In this document: one piece after another, positions 3,201 through 44,344 of the stretch
How positions within the stretch are numbered: the stretch's first letter is position 1
Layout of the letters: every line of letters starts with the position of its first letter
Source: Macrostomum lignano
Taxonomy: Eukaryota
Direction: 5' to 3'
Length of the DNA: 44,407 nt
NCBI GenBank assembly: GCA_002269645.1
Contig: NIVC01004488.1
Span: 1 to 44,407, forward strand
Made by a program: the position numbers and the translations under genes
Notes under the pieces: model-generated
What the model was told of the DNA's origin: nothing
The model's database searches: none
Seen by the model: only the letters and a program-made list of their open reading frames with translations

Positions 3201-4574
3201 AGAGAGGAGAGGTTAGAAAAACTTTGGGAACTGAATTGGACAGACAATTCACACAAAAGCTGTACGCGTGTCTATCTTAGCTACTATGTAGATTCTCTGA
3301 ATGAACAGCCCCGCCCCCACACACACACACTTAGTTAGGCCAACACCATGACTACGGTGAGAGCAGCCCCTGCCATAAATAGACAACCTGGCGCACTCAA
3401 CAGACAGGCCTTCGTACAGGGTTAACGTTGTCACGTGCTTCCGCCAATTCTCGAAATAATTTTCATTCAATTCTGTTTATTTGCTTATAATAAGCAGTTA
3501 AAGAAAATAAAAAATATAGAGAGACAGTTATTTACTGTTTTGATGGTAAAAGCTTTAAAATAACTTAACCTTCTCTCTAATAATAAGTGAATTTCCAATT
3601 TCGTAAGCACCTTGTTGACAGCTTAACAGTTGACACCTTGTTGCCTTATCTCACCAAGTGTGCCACTCCTTGTTGACAGCTACCTACAATCTCACAGAGT
3701 GTGTCACTCCTTGTTGACAGCTACCTCCAATCTCCCCAAGTGTCACTCCTGTTGACAGCTACCTCCAATCTCCCCAAGTGTCACTCCTGTTGACAGCTAC
3801 CTCCAATCTCCCCAAGTGTGTCACTCCTTGTTGACAGCTGCCTACAATCTCCCCAAGTGTGTCAATCCTTGTTGACAGCTGCCTACAATCTCCCCAAGTG
3901 TGTCAATCCTTGTTGACAGCTGCCTACAATCTCCCCAAGTGTGTCAATCCTTGTTGACAGCTGCCTACAATCTCCCCAAGTGTGTCAATCCTTGTTGACA
4001 GCTGCCTACAATCTCCCCAAGTGTGTCAATCCTTGTTGACAGCTACCTACAATCTACCAAAGTGTCTCTCCCGTGTTGAAAACTAAAAAGATAACATTGA
4101 CTACAATATGATCAGCAATCTTACCCAGAGCTGCAGAAACCCGGCCAAGTTGCCAAAGGCAATCTTGATGTAGGCATAGTCTCCGCCACTCTCGGTGATG
4201 GTAGTGCCCAGTTCAGCATAGCACAGGGCTCCAACCATGGACACAATGCCGCCAAGACTCCATGCAATCAGGGAGAAGCCAATCTATTCATTGGATAGAA
4301 AATGTATAGTTTAGATTTATGCACAATAAAAATATCAATAATAATGCAACTAAAAACTTACAGAGCCTTCACAATGCTTTAAAACACCAGTTGGAGTAAG
4401 GAAGATTCCAGATCCAATGATGCAGCCAATAATAATGTTGATACCACTTATAAGTCCAATTTCTCGCTTTAGCTCAATGGTTTGACTACCATTACCATCT
4501 TTATCAGATGCAGTACTACCATCAGCATTGGCCTTGGCAGCTTCAGCTTTATTGTTGCCCTTTTTTGAGGACAT
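240..4574 (-). CDS. SLC7 (LAT/HAT-type, APC superfamily) amino-acid transporter light chain, 5' part. Coding exons 4574-4362, 4283-4125 and 375-240; the gene continues past the window start
   Basis: Manual splicing across GT-AG introns (both phase 0) gives MSSKKGNN...[38 protein letters not shown]|[53 protein letters not shown]|[45 protein letters not shown]. It carries the SLC7 motifs [19 protein letters not shown] and IIRP. A GTGAGT donor follows position 240. An acceptor at 4585-4586 just upstream of the ATG implies an upstream non-coding exon. Confidence 0.93.
630..2898. repeat. 25-bp minisatellite (TGTTGGATTGAAGCTGGCGCCTCAA, ~90 copies) in an SLC7 intron
   Basis: The 25-bp period is visible directly (661, 686, ...), with variant units GGAATTGGCGCC and GGTTCC. 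It explains the repetitive + strand ORFs at 1010-2763. Confidence 0.97.
3620..4080. repeat. ~41-bp minisatellite (GTTGACAGCTGCCTACAATCTCCCCAAGTGTGTCAATCCTT, ~11 copies) in an SLC7 intron
   Basis: Period 41 (3841, 3882, ...), with shorter degenerate units at the left end. Confidence 0.92.
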
Positions 4575-11200: not shown

Positions 11201-11759
11201 GAAGTTGCAATGTACTTTTCCTTACTTTTTACGCATTACAGTATCAAAAATAACGAAGTGCAGCACCCAAAGGCTGACAACACGAAGCAGAGGCACGAAG
11301 ACCTTATACAGCCGAAGAGAATCCGAACAGCATTAGAGCAACTGCAGCATCTTTCTCGTCATTGAACAATGGATTTGCGAAAAATGTATACCTGTTGAGT
11401 ATGCCAGTCAATTCTCAGTTGAGCAGCTAAATTTATTGTCGATATTTCGATTGACAAAACAATAGAGAGAAGCTTTTAGAGTGGAACGCATGCCATTTGC
11501 TGCTAACTGAAAATATGTATGCTTGCAGCTCTGTTTGTGAGTAAATTTGCTAGCATTTTATAACATTTTGTTGTCTTGCATTGCATACGAGCGTAGACCT
11601 TTTACCCAGACACAATGGCAAGCCAAAATGGTATCTCGAGCGTATTTCCATGCAGCAACACCACAGGCAGAAGTTTTCAATTGATACTTGTAAGAGCTGG
11701 TACAGTTGTCCAGTTTAGAATTTTTGTCAAAATTTTTAGACTTAGCGCTATCATCTTAT

Positions 11760-12240
11760 CTGATTGTCCACTTCAACTGTCCCTCTGCACGACAATGGCC
11801 TCTCGGCCGGTATGGCTGCTTTTTGCAAGGCATCATCACCTCCAGGGAAAATTCGCTGTCAGGAATGCCCATTCTGCCTCTCCGGTGTTGAGAATGCGGA
11901 GCACTTCATCTGTGACTGCCCCGCCTTTACTCGGGAAAGGCTCATCTACCTCGGCTCAAACCTGGACCTCTCCGACGGTTTCAGGCCCGAGATTCTCTAC
12001 CAGCTCGTCCGCTACCTAAGGGCTACCGGGCGAGCGACCATTTGCGGACACCGGCACCACCGGATCTCCCTGCGCGACACCGCAGCACCACCACCTGCGC
12101 GCAGCGCAGCACCGTCACCCGTGGTCGCCAGGAGTTAGCGGAATGGGCGGCGAAGCCTTCCCGCTGTATCCGGATGCCCGGAACCCCCTGCAGCTGAGTC
12201 AAGTCCCTCTGTACGCTTAATACTGAATCAAATGTACATC
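11760..12240 (+). mobile_element. 3' fragment of a non-LTR retrotransposon (C-terminal CCHC zinc knuckle plus 3' UTR)
   Basis: ECPFCLSGVENAEHFICDCPAFTRERLIYLG matches the CxxC...E..EH...CP.F...R knuckle found at the end of LINE ORF2 proteins. Stop at 12138. Confidence 0.7.
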
Positions 12241-12339
12241 ATACGAGCGTAGTCTCTGCCCAAGTGCATGACTAATCAGTTCACCCACGAAGTCTCTCTC
12301 TTCCAATCAAATCCTTATTTCAACAACAACAAAATACAC

Positions 12340-13198
12340 TGTCAGCCAGTCAGGCCTGAGACAACGTCACAGGGTGCGTTTCAGGGCCTGGGCGCGAACG
12401 TAGTCCGCACCGCCGGCAGTGTCCATGGCGCCGGCATCAGCCAGCAGGCAGTCGACGAAACGCCGAGTGCACGCCTGCTTGCGTGAGCAATAGCATCTCC
12501 TGCACCGGCTGTGGGCAGTACGACTCGGCTCGGATGATTTGGCCTGCCAGCTGGAGTCGCCGATGGCGCAACAGTTCGCTGGGACAGGACAGGACGGTGC
12601 GGCGATAGAGCGCCGCATTGATGGCGTGCTCGTAGCCGCAATCCTGAAGTCGGCGCGCAGCAGGGCGCATCGACCTGCTGTTCGAGCGAATCTGTTAGCG
12701 TCCAGGTCTCGGCGTAGTACAGCAGGACGGTCTCGATCACCGCCCCGAACAACGCCGCCCTCTGGCGGTCAGGCAGGGCCTCGGACTGCAGGACAGCCGT
12801 CACGGAACGGAAGGAAGCACAGACAAGTCCACGGTGACGTCGCAAGTCCTCGCGAACGTCAGGTACCAGACCGCCAAGGTAGACAAACTGCTGACAGCGC
12901 GGAAGCCTCGTAGCCTTACAGTCAGCGCCTCGGCAGAAAATAGCAGCCTCGATGTCGTCCGGCACGCAGAGCACTAAGGTCTTTTGCGGTTGACCACCAG
13001 GCCAACGCTCGCCGCAACGCTCACCAGCTGGCGCTGAGCGCCCTCGACGGTCGAGGACAGCAGGGCGAGATCTTCAGCGTAGCCAAGCACGCTGAGCCGC
13101 CTCTCTGGTTGACGTCGACTCACGCGTCGCCGCAACAGAAAGCCGTCGTCGTTGGTAGGAATAGCCGTCCGCAGCACCCAGTCAAGCACCAAATTGCT
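12340..13198 (-). mobile_element. 5'-truncated, decayed RTE-like LINE (reverse-transcriptase C-terminal half)
   Basis: LVLDWVLR...LSVLGYAEDLALLS (YADD degraded to YAED), VGLVVNRK, FVYLGG, ETVLLYYAETWTLT, RRLQLAGQIIR. There is a frameshift near 12974 and a deletion near 12480. Stop at 12367. Confidence 0.88.
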
Positions 13199-13859
13199 TC
13201 TCACCAAAAGTGACGCAAAATGCATCATCTACAGTTGAAACGAGAAACGCAGGCGTAGTACTAATTGCGGCACTCGCGGCTGATACGAGTATCTGAGAAA
13301 GGTTGACCGCTGGTTTTGGCGTGGAAACTAACTTCTTGCCTACTGTACACCTACGGATTTCGAGCATCAATGATAACCGTGCAATTTGGATATCAAGCTC
13401 GAAAATTGGCATAGCAAACTGCTGCATTCGCGACACTAAAGGAACTAAAATTGAAAAGTACTTCCAATCGATTTTCGCTTGCCTTTAATTGGATTGAGCC
13501 AATTAGTTTAATCAATTTTCTCACTCGCATCGCAGGTCGCTCCACGAAAAGAGCCATCTTAGATTTAAGCGGAGTCTTGCTAATTGAGATTGATCAGTTG
13601 CAATCGATTTCACTCAATTTTAAGTGCCTTTGATTTTTATTAGGATGGTAAACTACTAAGGGCTTCCTTATGCCCAGATACCTAAACGCCAGAGCGGTTA
13701 AGTCTTCCTTATTCAGAGTGTGCTTATCCTCACTGTGTATCTGGGCGGTGCCTCTTGGTTGATTCGCCATCTAACATCTTCATTATTTTTCTTGATTGTG
13801 CATCCTTTTTTGAGCTGAGCATCTTCGTGAAATTTTTTACCTAGATGGTGAATCATATC

Positions 13860-14432
13860 TGTGCATCTTGGTTGTGCATCTTGGTTGTGCATCTTCTTCG
13901 AGCATCTTGGTTTTACATCTTCTTTGTGGGTCTTGGTTGTACATCTTCTTTGGGCATCTTGGTTCTACATCTTCTTTGAGCATCTTGGTTGTGCATCTTG
14001 GTTGTGCATCTTGGTTGTGCATCTTGGTTGTGCATCTACTTTGAACATCTTGGTTGTGCATCTTGGCTGTGCATTTTGGTTGTGCATCTTGGTTGTGCAT
14101 TTTGGTTGCGCACCTTGGTTGTGCATCTTGGCTGTATATCTTGGTTGTGCATCATCTTTGAACATCTTGGTTGTGCATCTTGGCTGTGCATTTTGGTTGT
14201 GCATCTTGGTTGTGCATTTTGGTTGCGCACCTTGGTTGTGCATCTTGGCTGTACATCTTGGTTGTGCATCATCTTTGAACATCTTGGTTGTGCATCTTAG
14301 CTGTGCATTTTGGTTGTGCATCTTAGTTGTGCATTTTGGTTGTGCATCTTGGTTGCGCACCTTGGTTGTGCATCTTGACTGTACATCTTGGTTGTGCAAC
14401 TTCTTTGAACATCTTGGCTGTGCATCTTGGTT
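13860..14432. repeat. 13-bp minisatellite (CTTGGTTGTGCAT) with a 117-bp (9-unit) higher-order repeat
   Basis: Period 13. The marker TTGAACATC recurs at 14041, 14158, 14275 and 14405. It explains the MHNQDAQPRCTTK ORFs. Confidence 0.93.
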
Positions 14433-14989
14433 CAAAAAATCACTCAGACACCAGACGCAGAAGTAAATTCCCCCCTAATCTATTTTTCTACTCTAGATTG
14501 CGCAGAAGTCCGCTACAGATCCATAAAAATTTTATTGACTGATCCATACATAGGATGAATCCTAAGCTGTTTCTAATATAAATGCTAATTAGTCTAAACT
14601 GGCCTTCTAAGCCGCGTCTTGTGCTCAGATTCTCATCGACTAGTCTCACCACGGTAGTTATAAAATAGTGAAGCGCCAAGTCTGAAGCTAACGCGTATGC
14701 TTTTATGGTATAAGGCAGTGAGTATCTCGATGGAAGTACCAAAAGCGACCAATTCTGCTGAAGGACTGAATACGCTCTGGTTGAACGTAGCAACGCATCA
14801 AAGTTTACTAAAGTACGAGCGTAGTAGCAGTCCAACATTCGGCAAGCTTGCGTGATCCATGGGAACTCTGCGCCCAGAACTACCCCAGACCGCCGCTTGG
14901 GTCTGATTGACGTCTGTTTGAATTTATCTTTTGGAATATAAATTTAGAATGCCTGCTTGATGTAAAATAAGGAAAAATAAGAAACAATG

Positions 14990-17652
14990 TATAACATAGT
15001 ATGACACATTATGACACAGCATGACACAGTATGACACAGTATGACACAATATGACACAGTATGACACAGTATGACACAGTATGACATAGTATAACACAGT
15101 ATGACACAGTATGACACAGTATGACACAGTATGACACAGTATGACATAGTATAACACAGTATGACACAGTATGACACAGTATGACACAATATGACACAGT
15201 ATGACACAATATGACACAGTATGACACAGTATGACATAGTATAACACAGTATGACACAGTATGACACAGTATGACACAGTATGACATAGTATAACACAGT
15301 ATAACACAGTATGACACAGTATGACACAGTATGACACACTATGACACAGTATGACACAGTATGACACAGTATGACACAGTATGACACAGTATGACACAGT
15401 ATGACACTATATGACACAGTATGACACAGTATGACACAGTATGACACACTATGACACAGTATGACACAGTATGGCACACTATGACACAGTATGACACACT
15501 ATGACACAGTATGACACAGTATGACACTATATGACACAGTATGACACAGTATGACACAGTATGACACACTATGACACTATATGACACAGTATGACACAGT
15601 ATGACACAGTATGACACACTATGACACAGTATGACACAGTATGGCACACTATGACACAGTATGACACACTATGACACAGTATGACACAGTATGACACTAT
15701 ATGACACAGTATGACACAGTATGACACAGTATGTCACAGTATGACACAGTATGACACAGTATGACACAGTATGACACTATATGACACAGTATGACACAGT
15801 ATGACACAGTATGACACTATATGACACTATATGACACAATATGACACAGTATGACACAGTATGACACAGTATGACACAGTATGACACTATATGACACAGT
15901 ATGACACAGTATGACACAGTATGACACTATATGACACTATATGACACAATATGACACAGTATGACACAGTATGACACAGTATGACACAGTATGACACTAT
16001 ATGACACAGTATGACACAGTATGACACAGTATGACACTATATGACACTATATGACACAATATGACACAGTATGACACAGTATGACACAGTATGACACAGT
16101 ATGACACTATATGACACAGTATGACACAGTATGACACAGTATGACACTATATGACACTATATGACACAGTATGACACTATATGACACTATATGACACAAT
16201 ATGACACAGTATGACACAGTATGACACAGTATGACACAGTATGACACTATATGACACAGTATGACACAGTATGACACAGTATGACACTATATGACACTAT
16301 ATGACACAATATGACACAGTATGACACAGTATGACACAGTATGACACAGTATGACACTATATGACACTATATGACACAGTATGACACAGTATGACACAGT
16401 ATGACACTATATGACACTATATGACACAGTATGACACTATATGACACAATATGACACAGTATGACACAGTATGACACAGTATGACACAGTATGACACTAT
16501 ATGACACAGTATGACACAGTATGACACAGTATGACACTATATGACACTATATGACACAGTATGACACTATATGACACTATATGACACAATATGACACAGT
16601 ATGACACAGTATGACACAGTATGACACAGTATGACACTATATGACACAGTATGACACAGTATGACACAGTATGACACTATATGACACTATATGACACAAT
16701 ATGACACAGTATGACACAGTATGACACAGTATGACACAGTATGACACTATATGACACTATATGACACAGTATGACACAGTATGACACTATATGACACTAT
16801 ATGACACAATATGACACAGTATGACACAGTATGACACAGTATGACACAGTATGACACTATATGACACTATATGACACAGTATGACACTATATGACACAAT
16901 ATGACACAGTATGACACAGTATGACACAGTATGACACAATATGACACTATATGACACAGTATGACACAGTATGACACAATATGACACAGTATGACACTAT
17001 ATGACACAATATGACACAATATGACACAATATGACACAGTATGACACAGTATGTCACAGTATGACACAGTATGACACAGTATGACACAGTATGACACAGT
17101 ATGACACTATATGACACAGTATGACACAGTATGACACACTATGACACAGTATGACACAATATGACACAGTATGACACAGTATGTCACAGTATGACACAGT
17201 ATGACACAGTATGACACAGTATGACACTATATGACACAGTATGACACAGTATGACACAGTATGACACAATATGACACAATATGACACAGTATGACACAGT
17301 ATGACACAATATGACACAATATGACACAGTATGACACAGTATGACACAGTATGACACAATATGACACTATATGACACAGTATGACACAGTATGACACAAT
17401 ATGACACAGTATGACACTATATGACACAATATGACACAATATGACACAATATGACACAGTATGACACAGTATGTCACAGTATGTCACAGTATGACACAGT
17501 ATGACACAGTATGACACAGTATGACACTATATGACACAGTATGACACAGTATGACACACTATGACACAGTATGACACTATATGACACAGTATGACACAGT
17601 ATGACACACTATGACACAATATGACACAATATGACACAATATGACACAGTAT
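14990..17652. repeat. 10-bp satellite (ATGACACAGT)n, ~265 copies
   Basis: Units stay in exact 10-bp register from 15001 to 17650. Variants include ATGACACTAT, ATGACACAAT and ATGACACACT. Confidence 0.98.
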
Positions 17653-17772
17653 GGGTCCCCACCCCCAGTAAACTCTCAAGTTATTCACAGCACTACTGAT
17701 GAAGTGAATAAAACCGTGCTCGAATCCTTACGGTCTGTCAATCCCGCTCCCCATTCCCAGCCTGCAGCCCAG

Positions 17773-17811
17773 CCAATAGGAATCGCCCACCATAGCTCAT
17801 AGTCATATAAA
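17773..17811 (+). promoter_or_regulatory. Candidate CCAAT box (17773-17777) and TATA box (TATAAA, 17806-17811) of the EGF-like peptide gene
   Basis: The motifs are ~30 bp apart and ~135 bp upstream of the ATG at 17946, with no intervening ATG. This is a motif match only. Confidence 0.35.
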
Positions 17812-17945
17812 GGCTCATCATCGCAGAGTCCCAAACCGCTCTCCGCCATCCCAACTTGAAGCCAGTCACCATCGTAGAACAACACTCCATTATCAACCAG
17901 GTGCCTGATCTCCTAAGAGCAACAGTTAATTATCGAACACAAATC

Positions 17946-20832
17946 ATGGGGTAAGCGCCTATACTAAATTAATTTGTTTGATTAATCCGTATACATGTAT
18001 AAATCAACGAGATAAAACAGTGGATTAACTCCGTGGGGAGCAGTAGAGTCTCGAAGGAGGTGCAGACATGGAAATCCAATTTTTCTCTCGCTCGAACCTC
18101 ATCAATCATGGCGGACGTGTCTGACTTTGCCGATTAATTTTCGCAAACTGTCAGCCTTGTCGCATCATCTGGCCGCTCGCGGGGGTAGCAGTAGAAATAG
18201 AGTGCGTCAGCTCTGTACAGAAAGGGGCCCGAGCAGAAACAGCGCCAGCAGCGCCAGCATTCCTAGAAATCTAATTTTCCGCATCATACAAGCAAACAAT
18301 AAAACTGCGCATACCAAGCAGCTCGGAGATGCACCGGCCTGATGGCTTTCTATGCAGGGGATGGGGCGACTTATTTCATATTTTATGAGCGTCTGAGCTG
18401 AGGCCACTGCCCTCCCACACATTCGAATTACCCCCTCCCGAGTCGGGCTGGCTGAATTCTGACAGAACCAGCTGTCAGGGAATTCTGTAGCCAAGTTCAA
18501 CTGTTCAATCAGAGAGCACATGCGGAGCTATTGATGTTGAACCACAGATACTAGAATAAGATGGGCCACTCAGCACATTTGCGTGTAAGCTACTTTCAGT
18601 TCAGTAGTAAGTTAAATAGCAGGATTTTAATTTATTTTTAAAGCCAAGGCTCATTTATTGACTCTTACCCCCAGCTTAAACCCTCTAACCGGCGCCTTTC
18701 CACACTACCCCCACCCCGCTCCAATTTTTATTGCCTTTCTTGGAATTCCAGCCTAAAGCTGCCATGTACATTTCAGTGGACTGGCTAATGTACATTATTG
18801 CTGAACTAATTAGCAAGCTGTTTACGCCTGCAAGCTTGGGCTTCTAAACTTATCAAATTCATTTCAACTGCCTTTATTTTTATAAAATAGCTTATGTACT
18901 CTTCTTTGCTACTGAACTGAAAGTAGAAAGCTGTTTTACTAAGTATATGTGCCTGAGTGGCCCATCCAGTTATTTTGGTATCTGGGTGTTGAGCTAGCTA
19001 ATGATTGTAATAGCAGCAGTCGTATTCGTGATGAACCAATGTTGATTTCGAATTTCCCTCATCCCTGACCTTTGTTGTAGCAAACCGAATCTGACAACGG
19101 CGCTCATCGTTTTGGGAGCCTGGGCACTGCTTCTGACTCCGCTGCTGGTTGCTGGAGAGTCGCCGATTGAAGACGAGGTCTTGGGTGAGGCGAGCTCGCG
19201 ATTCTTAGCAGGCTGGGCTGGACTGGCTCAAGTGGGAAATTAAGACCTCAGTACTCTAACAAGAAGGGGTTCGCATCCGGAAGCTGGGAAGCCAATTTGC
19301 GCTAATGAGGAAACTCCTCCTCGACTGCAAGCAGCGCCTTCATTTGCAATGCAGATGGACCGCGTGCGTTTAAGCTTGCTCTGATAGCTCATTTGAAGAA
19401 GATCTTCCTCCTGACTGCGCACACTCGCTGATCAATACTGAGCTTGAAGATTCAGGCAATATGGGGCTGCATGCGCTCAACCTCTACACGTGTGGAGGGG
19501 ACAGGTACAGATAGGAGAAAAAGTTAATTAAGTTGGATTGAAGCCGAGAAAACAATTGTGGCAGAATGTCCATAGACTATTTCGTAACACGAGAGTCTAC
19601 AACACTGTATGACTTGAGAATCCAAGCTGTGAGGCTTCAGGGCTGATTTGTCTATGACCAAGATCTCAGAATAAGATCGTCACTTGTGCAAAAAGAAGCC
19701 GACATGGGGTTGCTTAAATTTTGACTTTACTGCAGAGACTACTGATGAAATTGACTTCAGTAGTTGATTTTCCCGCTGTCGCAATTTGCAAAATTTCTCA
19801 CATTGGGCCGTATGCAGAAAGCCTAGTCCAGACTAGCTAGTCCGGACTTGAGTAGTTCAGTCTATAGTCTATGGTCTAGCTACCCTAGTTCTGTCTGTAG
19901 TAGATCGGTCTAACTTTGTGTTTCTGCATACCAAATCCAAGTCCAGACTAGCTTTTCAAGACCGTACTACCCTAGACAGAGCTTTCTGCATACGGCCCAA
20001 TGGCTTCTAAGACCACATAAGTGGTTAATTAGTGGTCCATTTTGTGTATATATGATCCTTGAGCTCAGCTCTAAAGTATAGGTGGAAGAGATCGTGTCTA
20101 TGCCTTTCACAGGCCTCAGTAAATCCATCCTGAATCATGCCTCGACTGACTGTTGAAGAACGCCTCCAACTGATTGGAATGCAGCGCGTGAAAGTCAAGT
20201 TTGCGGCCATTTACCAACTATACGGGGCACTGTGCGAGATGGAGAAAGGCGGCTGAGTACTCCAGAAGACGTATAGGATCAGCTATTGGTGCAACTGGCT
20301 CTGCAGAATCGAAGGATATCGGCCAGAGTATTGAGGCACATGTGGCGCTCTGCGACAACAGGAAAGAATGAGTAGGAAGACTGTACTTCGAAGACTTCGG
20401 GAAACCGGTGTTCGTGCAAGGCAGCCTTGCAGAAAGATGCCAATGAAGGCGCCAATAAAGAGTGAATTGGAGAATGCAGTAAGGCTAATTCGTACTGACG
20501 GATTGTTGAAAGTCTGGCGCCAGGGCCGCCAGTAACTCGTGTCTGCCTGCATCAACGGGACGCTGCAAGGCGGAGGTGGTTCCCTACCCCTTCATGTAGG
20601 CATTCATTGGAATGGAAAGACGGCTCCTTCATTTCTACCAAGAGTCACGGAGTCAGAGAAAATATTGCCCAGGGACTTTCAGTCATAGACATTTTCTTGA
20701 CTTCACTCCGACTGTGACCACACCGAGAATTAAAATGCAAACTTAAATTTGTTCCCTGTTCCTATCTGTCTATCTATCTATCTATCTATCTATCTATCAA
20801 TCTATCTATCTATCTATCTGTCTATCTATCTG

Positions 20833-20867
<35 letters not shown>

Positions 20868-20868
20868 G

Positions 20869-20910
<42 letters not shown>

Positions 20911-20911
20911 C

Positions 20912-20988
<77 letters not shown>

Positions 20989-21200
20989 CCTACCTACCTG
21001 CCCATGAACTCAAACCCGCAGAGAAGCGCGGTTCTAAGGACGTGATCACCTACTTTCCCTGCTCCTACGGCGGCATCCCGTACCCCGTGACCTGCGGCAG
21101 CGGCACTGGGCCAAGGATCTTCAAGTCGCGCAACAGATTTCTGGTTTGCGTCTGCCTCTGCCCGCCAGGCAAGACCGGCCCGAACTGCGGAAGCTCCTGA
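17946..21200 (+). CDS. Secreted prepro-peptide (95 aa) with an atypical single EGF-like 6-Cys domain. Coding exons 17946-17950, 19081-19184 and 21022-21200
   Basis: ATG GG|gtaagc (phase 2) joins ttgtag|C AAA CCG...TTG G|gtgagg (phase 1), which joins cgcag|AG AAG CGC...TCC TGA. Product: [95 protein letters not shown]. It has a hydrophobic signal, an acidic pro-piece and a dibasic site. [12 protein letters not shown] fits the EGF_1 pattern C-x-C-x2-{V}-x2-G-{C}-x-C. AATAAA lies at 21304-21309. Exon 1 has only 5 coding nt and is the least certain part. Confidence 0.8.
19801..20002. mobile_element. ~200-bp MITE with perfect 22-bp inverted ends, in intron 2 of the EGF-like peptide gene
   Basis: CATTGGGCCGTATGCAGAAAGC (19801-19822) is the exact reverse complement of GCTTTCTGCATACGGCCCAATG (19981-20002). 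The interior is non-coding. Confidence 0.8.
20137..20650 (+). mobile_element. Decayed Tc1/mariner transposase relic
   Basis: Across frameshifts and stops it reads [65 protein letters not shown] and DGLLKVWRQ...[12 protein letters not shown]...GIHWNGKT. These match Tc1 HTH and early DDE-domain motifs. Confidence 0.75.
20762..21000. repeat. (TCTA)n microsatellite, ~60 units, ending just upstream of the exon 3 acceptor
   Basis: Seen directly. Confidence 0.97.
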
Positions 21201-21303
21201 CTGCTACTGACCAGGGAGTAACGCTGACTGCTTACAATATCAAGAAATTGTCCTCTGCGACCTCCAAGTCCCTGGCTTGAAAAGCGACCAGCAAACTGTG
21301 TTT

Positions 21304-21309
21304 AATAAA
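21304..21309 (+). terminator. Candidate polyadenylation signal of the EGF-like peptide gene
   Basis: AATAAA about 100 nt after the TGA at 21198-21200. Confidence 0.5.
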
Positions 21310-21904
21310 TATTTCGAAAGACAAAATTATATCGTTATAAAAGGTACAGCAGCTTCACTCGCTATTCAGCTGAGTTGCAGGATATTTCCATAGCAACGCA
21401 AACGTGAACTGCGTTATAACAGGTAGAGTTGATGGCTTGAATTTCTTGGGATGAAATACGAGAGAAACTCTCAATCGGAGTTGTATGGAATTTTAAGTTC
21501 ACCAAATGACCCACATACGTTCTTTGCTTAACTTAAGAGAGTCAGCTTGCAAAGCTAAAAGTGCACAGTAAGGGTATTTAATTGGTTCATTATATAAGCG
21601 CTGTTGCAGTCGACAGTACACTTCGAAAGAAAGAGAAATGCAGGGTGTCGCAACGCGACAAACGTTGACGGAACTCAACTGTCAGATTGGCTGAAGGCTC
21701 CTGTCAGGTCCGTCTTCCGTCTCATCGTCTCCCGCCGTTTTCTGATCCAATTTTAATGGTAATGCGCGAGTTTAAGCCTTAATTAATAATTAAGGGTGCC
21801 CAATCCCATGCTAAATCTTTCTATGTATCGAGTCGGATGCTACTCGCGAAAGGTTTAGTGCCAATTATTTTTGTTCAAGTATTCACTTGGTACTTCAAAG
21901 TTTA

Positions 21905-23736
21905 GAGGCACAAGAGACGCAGAAGACACAAGAGAAGAGGCACAAGAGACACAAGAGACACAAGAGACACAAGATACGCAAGCGACGCAAGAGACACAAG
22001 AGACACAAGAGACGCAAGAGACACAAGCGACACAAGAGAAGAGGCACAAGAGGCACAAGAGACACAAGAGACACAAGATACGCAAGCGACGCAAGAGACA
22101 CAAGAGACACAAGAGGCACAAAAGGCACGAGACACAAGAGACACAAGAGACACAAGAGACACAAGAGACACAAGAGACACAAGAGACACAAAAGACACAA
22201 GAGGCACAAAAAGCACGAGACGCAAGAGACACAAGCGACGCAAGAGACACAAGCGACGCAAGAGACACAAGCGACGCAAGAGACACAAGAGGTACAAGAG
22301 ACACAAAAGACAGGAGACACAAGAGACACAAGAAACAGAAGAGACGCAAGAGACACAAGGGACGCAAGAGACACAAGAGGCACAAAAGACACGAGACACA
22401 AGAGGCAAAAAAAGACACGAGATGCAAGAGACACAAGCGACGCAAGAGACACAAAAGACACAAGAGACACAAGAGACACAAGAGGCACAAAAGACAGTAG
22501 ACACAAGAGACACAAGAGACGCAAGAGACGCAAGAGACGCAAGAGACGCAAGAGACGCAAGAGACGCAAGAGACGCAAGAGACGCAAGAGACGCAAGAGA
22601 CGCAAGAGATGCAAGAGACGCAAGCGACGCAAAAGATACAAGAGGCACAAGAGGCACAAAAGACAGGAGACACAAGAGACACAAGAAACACAAGAGACGC
22701 AAGAGACACAAGCGACACAAGAGACACAAGAGAAGAGACACAAGAGACACAAGAGACGCAAGAGACACAAGAGACAAAAGAGACACAAGAGACACAAGAG
22801 ACGCAAGAGACGCAAGAGACGCAAGAGACACAAGAGACGCAAGAGATGCAAGAGACGCAAGCGACGCAAAAGATACAAGAGGCACAAGAGGCACAAAAGA
22901 CAGGAGACACAAGAAACACAAGAAACACAAGAGACGCAAGAGACACAAGCGACACAAGAGACACAAGAGAAGAGACACAAGAGACACAAGAGACACAAGC
23001 GACGCAAGAGAAGAGACACAAGAGACACAAGAGACGCAAGAGACGCAAGCGACACAAGAAACACAAGCGACGCAAGAGACACAAGAGGCACAAAAGACAC
23101 GAGACACAAGAGACGCAAGAGACGCAAGAGACGCAAGAGACGCAAGAGACGCAAGAGACCCAAGAGACGCAAGAGACGCAAGCGACGCAAGAGACGCAAG
23201 AGACACAAGAGACAAAAGAGACACAAGAGACACAAGAGACGCAAGAGACGCAAGAGACGCAAGAGACACAAGAGACGCAAGAGATGCAAGAGACGCAAGC
23301 GACGCAAGAGACACAAGAGGCACAAAAGACACGAGACACAAGAGACGCAAGAGACACAAGAGACGCAAGAGACACAAGAGACGCAAGAGACACAAGAGAC
23401 GCAAGAGACACAAGCGACGCAAGAGACACAAGAGGCACAAAAGACACGAGACACAAGAGACGCAAGAGACGCAAGAGACACAAGAGACACAAGAGACGCA
23501 AGAGACGCAAGAGACGCAAGCGACGCAAGAGACACAAGAGACACAAGAGACGCAAGAGACACAAGAGACACAAGAGACGCAAGAGACACAAGAGACACAA
23601 GAGACGCAAGAGACACAAGAGACGCAAGAGACACAAGAGACACAAGAGACGCAAGAGACACAAGAGACACAAGAGACGCAAGAGACACAAGAGACATAAG
23701 AGACATAAGAGACGCAAGAGACACAAGAGACGCAAG
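21905..23736. repeat. 9-bp tandem repeat (AAGAGACAC/AAGAGACGC, ~200 units) with recurring 7-bp variant units and block duplications
   Basis: The unit has no stop codon in any frame, which explains the overlapping 200-675 aa ORFs on both strands. Confidence 0.95.

Positions 23737-24990: not shown

Positions 24991-44344
<19,354 letters not shown>

Follow-up and report, generated by a model that had tools for sequence, protein, structure and literature searches.

What does a short three-exon gene of the flatworm Macrostomum lignano make: a signalling peptide, a toxin, a gland product, or only the tail of a much larger protein? The gene, Mlig026996, lies on the plus strand of contig NIVC01004488.1 (assembly GCA_002269645.1), the whole of which (44,407 nt) is called the window here, and all positions are those of the window unless another contig is named. 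Our analysis suggests, at a probability of about one half, that the 95-residue precursor encoded by this gene gives rise to a convertase-processed, secreted signalling peptide of a family derived from the epidermal growth factor (EGF) domain. In the mechanism that we propose, a signal peptide (predicted cleavage after Gly27, in VAG) would direct the precursor into the secretory pathway, a subtilisin-like proprotein convertase would cut after Lys38-Arg39 and so remove a 10-residue acidic pro-piece, and the remaining 56 residues (about 5.84 kDa) would be released as a peptide with a beta-sheet fold and three disulfide bonds. The fold of this peptide may be an EGF derivative in which the C2 'C-x-N/S-G' region and the loop C4-x-C5-x8-C6 are retained (C1–C6 being the cysteines of canonical EGF), with a newly placed Cys presumably paired with C1, and the peptide would probably act as an extracellular ligand (hormone or growth-factor-like) on a receptor other than canonical ErbB.

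Mlig026996 as an annotated, spliced gene

The three-exon model (Table 1) yields a protein of 95 residues that matches GenBank entries PAA47331.1 and PAA56703.1 ('hypothetical protein BOX15_Mlig026996g1, partial') from end to end at 100% identity, and the GenBank annotation places the gene at 17838–21200. M. lignano is free-living and a hidden polyploid, and further copies of the gene are found on NIVC01002587.1 (here L002), with exons 100% identical to those of the window, and on NIVC01003871.1 (here L009), the 'g2' copy, which is 1–2% divergent and encodes PAA49465.1. The junction peptides QIMG/KPNL and EVL/EKRGS (the slash marking the join) are present in the g1 proteins PAA47331.1 and PAA56703.1 and in the g2 protein PAA49465.1, and the exon joins shared with these proteins far exceed chance. 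Since the M. lignano annotation was built on a genome-guided transcriptome from RNA sequencing (RNA-seq; StringTie/TACO plus de novo assembly), with boundaries set by 5'- and 3'-end data (PMC5730564), we take the Mlig026996 annotation as evidence of spliced transcripts, at the level of the annotation and not of the reads, and we hold the gene model to be correct with near certainty. A preliminary description of this DNA, made from its letters, had proposed the same plus-strand gene, with three exons joined through canonical sites in phases 2 and 1 into 95 residues, and all of this matches the GenBank protein; the transcript joins that it wished to see confirmed (17950/19081 and 19184/21022) recur in the RNA-seq-derived annotation, and the polyadenylation signal that it reported is in place. 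Its view of the gene as hidden and undescribed has to be given up: the gene is real but not hidden, being annotated as a hypothetical protein without assigned function in GenBank and UniProt, where A0A1I8HUJ2 bears the label 'EGF-like domain-containing protein'.

This last entry (857 aa; P0003 in our numbering) raises the possibility that exons 2 and 3 belong to a far larger protein, of which the 95-residue precursor would be an annotation fragment. A0A1I8HUJ2 comes from an older assembly and fuses exons 2–3 to 763 upstream residues, its C-terminus equals precursor residues 2–95, and the GenBank entries are flagged 'partial'. However, the first 763 residues map patchily to 11.6–13.2 kb of the window, on both strands and at 46–100% identity, they contain no Pfam domain and overlap a remnant resembling a long interspersed nuclear element (LINE), and a 2.7-kb satellite (14989–17653) separates that block from the gene. 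Moreover, a TATA box lies ~30 nt ahead of the start of the RNA-seq-based model, which has no ATG upstream of 17946. The 36 additional N-terminal residues of PAA47331.1 are an in-frame translation of the 5' untranslated region (5'UTR), and the 'partial' flag reflects only that the frame stays open through it. Considering the patchy mapping to both strands, the lack of a Pfam domain and the intervening satellite, we regard A0A1I8HUJ2 as an ab initio chimera and the larger protein as extremely improbable. Exon 3 does not belong to a protein with several EGF domains or a transmembrane segment, so that the alternative splicing into such a protein, which the preliminary description had named as one case that would undo its reading, does not apply. 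The practical gain is a corrected annotation, which sets the start codon at 17946, adds a predicted signal peptide and Lys-Arg (KR) site, defines the family and discards the chimeric UniProt model of 857 aa.

The identifier Mlig026996 is not mentioned in the searchable full texts and is absent from the supplementary tables examined for PMC5730564, PMC5816591, PMC7336406, PMC5946080 and PMC12732829. No biological paper in the searchable literature matched the peptide motifs; the one match, in a paper on engineering, was a chance run of letters.

Predicted precursor processing and family conservation

The precursor begins with a positively charged n-region (K3) and a rather long hydrophobic h-region (17 residues; Kyte-Doolittle values up to 2.7 over residues 9–25), with V-A-G at positions -3 to -1 of the predicted cleavage site, which puts small residues at both -3 and -1. 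These are followed by a pro-piece of 10 residues, five of them acidic, by KR, and by the 56-residue predicted mature peptide, which contains three Lys, three Arg, one Asp, no Glu and six Cys (net charge +5; isoelectric point 9.1). The coding sequence (CDS) ends three residues past the last Cys and encodes no second hydrophobic segment, and hence no transmembrane anchor. On recount, then, the layout given in the preliminary description (hydrophobic N-terminus, acidic 10-residue pro-piece, KR, six-Cys peptide) and its figures for the peptide (56 residues, 3K+3R-1D, net about +5, six Cys) are both upheld, and exon 3 stands in neither a transmembrane nor a multi-EGF context. The paralogue of M. 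lignano described below is labelled 'Secreted protein' in UniProt. The prohormone convertase PC2 has a homologue in M. lignano that is neuronally expressed and essential for post-embryonic development (PMC4490696), and given this enzyme and the conservation of [ED]KR within the family, cleavage by a convertase after KR(39) would be expected. From these features of the sequence we consider it likely that the product is a secreted, processed peptide.

Homologues were sought by an exhaustive phmmer search against 1.84 billion cluster representatives, matches being counted below 1e-3. Eight such matches were obtained: the query itself, the chimeric model, an M. lignano paralogue, the short proteins P0007, P0008 and P0009, which derive from metagenome assemblies, and two long multi-repeat proteins matched by chance. 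A DNA scan of metagenomes, run with a two-sequence alignment, added three more relatives of P0009 (on contigs L006–L008), and a word-indexed search with the family profile and a P0009-type sequence found no new members. In every metagenome contig one terminal exon holds the whole homologous region, with a polypyrimidine-AG acceptor 4–9 codons upstream of EKR/DKR, and AATAAA follows downstream in two of the contigs (L003 and L005). Because terminal exon, acceptor and EKR/DKR recur together, we take the metagenome relatives to be genes of eukaryotes that share the 'mature-peptide exon' arrangement. The flanking open reading frames (ORFs) of these contigs had no Pfam match, no flank is conserved between contigs, and a literature search for the contig accessions matched no paper.

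The alignment of the eight family members has the invariant elements F-x-C, C, G-x-G-P, C-x-C-x-C and P-x-C, and outside Macrostomum the identity is 37–45%. EKR or DKR stands directly before the domain in seven of the eight; the paralogue instead has RR 10–13 residues upstream. This paralogue (P0004, P0010 and P0011; UniProt A0A1I8HGG9, A0A1I8HQH8 and A0A1I8G223) is 71% identical to the query in the Cys domain; it has a different signal peptide, a longer pro-region, a net charge of +1 and CSAEAAGPNC in place of a 10-residue segment of the query. M. lignano thus has only two family loci, each with near-identical polyploid copies, and tblastn detected no tandem copy of the peptide gene in the window. 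The search for a paralogue family proposed in the preliminary description was in this respect fruitful, with one M. lignano paralogue and the metagenome relatives, and in another respect not, no toxin family having been matched. We are dealing with a small conserved family that has no Pfam model, and whose gene identifier and motifs are absent from the searchable biological literature.

Two properties of the family bear on what the peptide may do. First, the mature peptides, as predicted, carry a net charge of +5 in the query, +1 in the paralogue, 0 in P0008, +6 in P0007 and +13 in L005 and L007, and with a span from 0 to +13 cationicity is not a family property. Second, the four P0009-like sequences share 83–93% of their amino acids and only 71–84% of their nucleotides. 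Estimated by the Nei-Gojobori method, the nonsynonymous divergence (dN) in this clade is 0.04–0.13, and the synonymous divergence (dS) reaches 0.88 in one pair and 1.66 in another and is saturated beyond estimate in the remaining four; such low dN with high or saturated dS indicates strong purifying selection on the domain. Between the M. lignano copies the CDS (288 nt) has two differences, both synonymous, and the non-coding sequence has diverged by 1.7%, a comparison that is underpowered (Fisher p=0.23).

The P0009-like clade has a further peculiarity. In its four regions (L005 2655–2918, L006 1971–2222, L007 5001–5249 and L008 192–455; positions on these contigs) an invariant TGA, in the context TGA-CTA or TGA-CTG, follows ...NKP[VA]R. 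Beyond it, 16–21 codons in frame show protein-level conservation together with synonymous changes, and every extension ends in Gly followed by a stop codon. The extensions read LSGRGGWLPMRRRKFYFRG, LSGRGWIPMRRRKFYG, LPGTGGWIPMRRRKFHFRG and LKTSNWKSVNRQKFKSRNRFG, with WIPMRRRKF[YH]FRG and WLPMRRRKFYFRG as examples of their form, each running up to the stop. Between L005 and L007 the extension has a dN of 0.10 with saturated dS. No selenocysteine insertion sequence or other Rfam match was obtained for the extension at E<=1. The pattern suggests programmed UGA readthrough, or selenocysteine (Sec) insertion, which would add a second, possibly amidated peptide in this clade. M. lignano has no such extension after the stop.

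Likeness to EGF and the candidate roles

The preliminary description had called the peptide EGF-like. In favour of this, the query matches the EGF_1 signature (C-x-C-x5-G-x2-C), and all five other members tested match EGF_1 or EGF_2 (C-x-C-x2-[GP]-[FYW]-x4-8-C), with regular expressions modelled on PROSITE PS00022 and PS01186; this match to the PROSITE-type pattern of the EGF C-terminus explains the 'EGF-like' label in UniProt. A sequence search of the PDB aligned only the last 15 residues, to Notch-type EGF repeats (E about 0.1), and a profile search aligned only the C-terminal loop (E about 0.04); matches to angiogenin and to a Fab were dismissed as chance. When the family alignment was compared by hhalign with a set of 10 canonical EGF domains, a probability of 88.5% was obtained (pairwise E=2.7e-6, 36 columns). 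In the register of this alignment the family cysteines correspond to EGF C2, C4, C5 and C6, and the 'xNGxG' after the second Cys of the family falls on the EGF C2 'xxxGxC3', which places EGF C3 opposite an invariant Gly. The additional Cys lies within a five-residue insertion directly before C4, two residues ahead of it, giving CxCxC. AlphaFold2, run on a five-sequence alignment, modelled the peptide with fair confidence (pLDDT 75.9, rising to 82.5 when the domain was trimmed) and predicted a sheet of three long strands, VITYFP, GPRIFK and LVCVCLC, plus a small C-terminal loop.

The family thus shares with the EGF domain six Cys in about 45 residues, the 'C-x-N/S-G-x-G' after the second Cys, the C-terminal loop pattern in each member tested, and a predicted beta-hairpin core with a small C-terminal loop. 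It differs in having an invariant Gly for canonical C3 and an extra Cys two residues before C4, in the distance from C2 to the next Cys (17–20 residues versus 4–5), and in its predicted strands, which are longer and include an N-terminal third strand. The spacing in the M. lignano peptide (C-x10-C-x17-C-x-C-x-C-x8-C) and in the family (C-x6-10-C-x17-20-C-x-C-x-C-x8-C) accordingly departs from the canonical C1-x-C2-x4-5-C3-x8-13-C4-x-C5-x8-C6. Given these departures from the EGF domain, we do not file the family as a bona fide member; it resembles an EGF-derived scaffold in which one disulfide partner has been relocated. The earlier EGF-like assignment holds in part: the CxCx5Gx2C signature, the hhalign result and weak EGF matches in the PDB and Pfam, limited to the C-terminal loop, speak for it, and the Cys spacing and the sub-threshold Pfam scores speak against it. 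The pacifastin, Kazal, inhibitor cystine knot, cystine-knot growth factor and defensin frameworks were rejected on Cys spacing.

One candidate role is that of a canonical EGF-receptor (ErbB) ligand made as a soluble mini-precursor, in the manner reported for the secreted molluscan L-EGF. The L-EGF of Lymnaea stagnalis, also a spiralian, is reportedly a soluble single-EGF peptide without a transmembrane precursor, and in this it is like Mlig026996; its six-Cys spacing is said to be canonical, which sets it apart from the peptide described here. The EGF_1 signature, EGF repeats as the best sequence matches in the PDB, an hhalign score obtained against a set dominated by ErbB ligands and the UniProt label all speak for this role, but against it stand the loss of canonical C3, the distance of 17–20 residues in place of 4–5 after C2, the Pfam EGF models (all below threshold) and the lack of an EGF among the listed Foldseek matches. 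In addition, human EGF requires Arg41 and Leu47 for receptor binding; the equivalent of Arg41 is Asn in the hhalign register, and the peptide ends three residues after C6 and so has no equivalent of Leu47. Nor is the precursor a type-I transmembrane or multidomain protein. With neither the anchor nor these two residues, a classical ErbB ligand appears quite unlikely.

A venom, defence or antimicrobial effector, that is, a cationic disulfide-rich gland peptide of the gigantoxin-I type directed against prey, predators or microbes, was favoured by the preliminary description. The net charge of +5 and the isoelectric point of the M. lignano peptide suit such a role, and the precursor layout agrees with the standard layout of sea-anemone toxin precursors (signal peptide, a propart of 7–11 residues, mature peptide), among which the EGF-like toxin gigantoxin I is found (PMC11552618). 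As in gigantoxin I and short cnidarian toxins, the propart closes on a basic site and is followed by one disulfide-rich peptide some 50 residues long, with no transmembrane anchor. The likeness ends there: the M. lignano peptide has no sequence match to any toxin, and searches of Pfam and of the PDB (by sequence and by profile) returned no toxin family or toxin structure. The Cys framework of gigantoxin I, which we take to be canonical EGF, also sets it apart. Furthermore, the charge is not conserved (+1 in the paralogue, 0 in P0008, +6 to +13 in others), selection in the related clade is strongly purifying and not diversifying, and with only two loci in M. lignano, and none of them duplicated in tandem within the window, there is no sign of a toxin-style expansion. 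M. lignano is not known to have a venom apparatus. We therefore judge a toxin or antimicrobial effector unlikely, and the slant of the preliminary description towards one is not sustained.

The product could also belong to a reproductive or other gland (seminal fluid, prostate, eggshell or adhesive gland) and have a lineage-specific role. It is small, predicted to be secreted and free of Pfam domains, and the prostate and tail glands of M. lignano express many small secreted proteins without annotation (PMC5977470). However, the family is conserved well outside Macrostomum, and reproduction-related genes in this genus are reported to evolve rapidly (PMC7336406); nor does the gene identifier occur in 3 Mb of supplementary tables from that study, which is weak evidence. 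A gland product of this kind seems very unlikely.

Considering the family-wide purifying selection, the two loci and the variable charge together, a receptor ligand fits better than a venom or defence effector, and constraint over the whole surface, as the clade appears to have, is typical of ligands. The signalling peptide that we propose can be compared with the PC2-processed prohormones and neuropeptide precursors of flatworms (for example those of Schmidtea mediterranea; the M. lignano PC2 homologue is RNA815_2403.2). In both, the precursor is small and secretory and a conserved KR cleavage site stands immediately ahead of a conserved peptide, and M. lignano both possesses and requires the processing enzyme (PMC4490696). 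In contrast to the short linear or amidated peptides of those prohormones, Mlig026996 would release a 56-residue three-disulfide domain, in one copy per precursor and with no C-terminal amidation signal in M. lignano.

Several points weigh against this proposal. The signalling role is read from the sequence. Pfam gave no match for the M. lignano precursor at E<=10, and across the eight family members the best matches were all insignificant (EGF_C8A_B_C6, E=0.037; EGF_2, 0.2; cEGF, 0.38; hEGF, 0.75). Foldseek found no match in the PDB for either of the two AlphaFold2 models (E>0.7, template modelling score <=0.34) and no EGF among the matches listed (best 50 per model), although Foldseek is weak at ~50 residues. 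The relatives outside M. lignano come from metagenome contigs. The paralogue has no KR at the homologous position (ASRG stands there, with RR further upstream), so that details of processing may differ. Finally, as the h-region is long (~17–21 residues), it is possible that it serves as an uncleaved signal anchor instead of a cleaved signal peptide.

If a processed ligand is indeed made, it would be a new disulfide-rich hormone or growth-factor candidate in a regenerating flatworm that is open to transgenesis and RNA interference. A family whose EGF scaffold has swapped one disulfide partner would, if this is true, also offer a useful natural experiment on how the EGF fold evolves and on the deorphanisation of receptors. 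The signalling-peptide proposal has a bolder extension, in which the family is widely conserved in animals, its convertase-released peptides have a rewired EGF fold (the C1–C3 disulfide moved to the new Cys, with a CxCxC core) and act through an undescribed receptor, and one clade adds a second, possibly amidated peptide by UGA readthrough or Sec; taken as a whole this extension is doubtful.

Features of the locus and its surroundings

The features of the gene and of the sequence around it are collected in Table 1. The TATAAA lies 23–32 nt upstream of the transcript starts at 17829–17838 (17838 for g1 according to the annotation, ~17829 for g2 as deduced from its protein), and the 5'UTR contains no ATG, which makes 17946 the first AUG of the transcript. 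The acceptor of intron 1 reads ...TTGTTGTAG, and exon 2 spans CAAACC...CTTGG; the acceptor of intron 2 reads ...AACCCGCAG, and its join reads CCCGCAG/AGAAGCGC...TCCTGA. The coding part of exon 3 is 21022–21200, and AATAAA lies 104 nt downstream of the stop. A search of the window against Rfam gave no match.

Table 1. Features of the Mlig026996 gene and of its surroundings, in window positions
Feature	Position	Strand	Remarks
Core promoter (predicted)	CCAAT 17773–17777; TATAAA 17806–17811	+	Placed by pattern; function putative
Exon 1	17838–17950	+	5'UTR 17838–17945; coding ATGGG 17946–17950; donor GTAAGC
Intron 1	17951–19080	+	Phase 2, GT...AG, 1130 nt; junction backed by annotated protein (QIMG/KPNL)
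Exon 2	19081–19184	+	Remainder of predicted signal peptide to 19156; most of pro-piece (ESPIEDEVL) 19157–19184; donor GTGAGG; tblastn
Intron 2	19185–21021	+	Phase 1, 1837 nt; carries the MITE-like insertion, Tc1/mariner remnant and (CTAT)59 microsatellite listed below
Exon 3, start	21022–21029	+	Finishes Glu37; encodes Lys38-Arg39, predicted dibasic convertase site
Mature 56-aa peptide (predicted)	21030–21197	+	Six Cys; EGF-type C-terminal loop
Stop and 3'UTR	21198–21330	+	TGA 21198–21200; AATAAA 21304–21309
MITE-like insertion, intron 2	19792–20018		~228 bp; 36-nt terminal inverted repeats 19801–19836 and 19967–20002, 83% complementary
Tc1/mariner transposase remnant, intron 2	about 20130–20620		Decayed; frame-stitched translation matches HTH_Tnp_Tc3_2 (E=5.7e-6, under the Pfam cut-off)
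(CTAT)n microsatellite, intron 2	20762–20996		59 copies; stops 25 nt before the exon-3 acceptor
10-bp satellite	14989–17653		GTATGACACA x 266
Purine-rich 9-mer array	21904–23736		AGAGACACA x 208; AT skew up to 0.84
GC-rich block	11600–13210		~53% GC
Tandem arrays	772–2897; 3648–4065; 13860–14432		25-mer x 85; 41-mer x 10; 26/117-mer array
Axonemal dynein heavy-chain gene	24991–44285	-	Very large exons (the longest 986 aa); domains MT, AAA_9, Dynein_heavy and Dynein_C

Copies of the gene differ in the content of intron 2. The insertion resembling a miniature inverted-repeat transposable element (MITE) is missing from the otherwise 98–99% identical copy L002 and present in the g2 copy L009, and the length of the (CTAT)n tract varies among the copies, as seen from a break in the alignments with L002 and L009.

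Apart from the peptide and dynein genes the contig is dense in repeats. The 10-bp satellite stops some 185 bp short of the transcript start and, since it reaches 17653, limits the unique promoter region to 17654–17837. The GC-rich block has ORFs on both strands that look LINE-like by eye (Cys/His-rich, CQECPFC...HFICDCP) and have no Pfam match; it is the block built into the chimeric A0A1I8HUJ2. Downstream, the purine-rich array separates the peptide gene from that for dynein and gives rise to long spurious ORFs on both strands. The dynein gene is the downstream neighbour both in the window and in L009, and L002 aligns to the dynein region of the window at 98.5% DNA identity.

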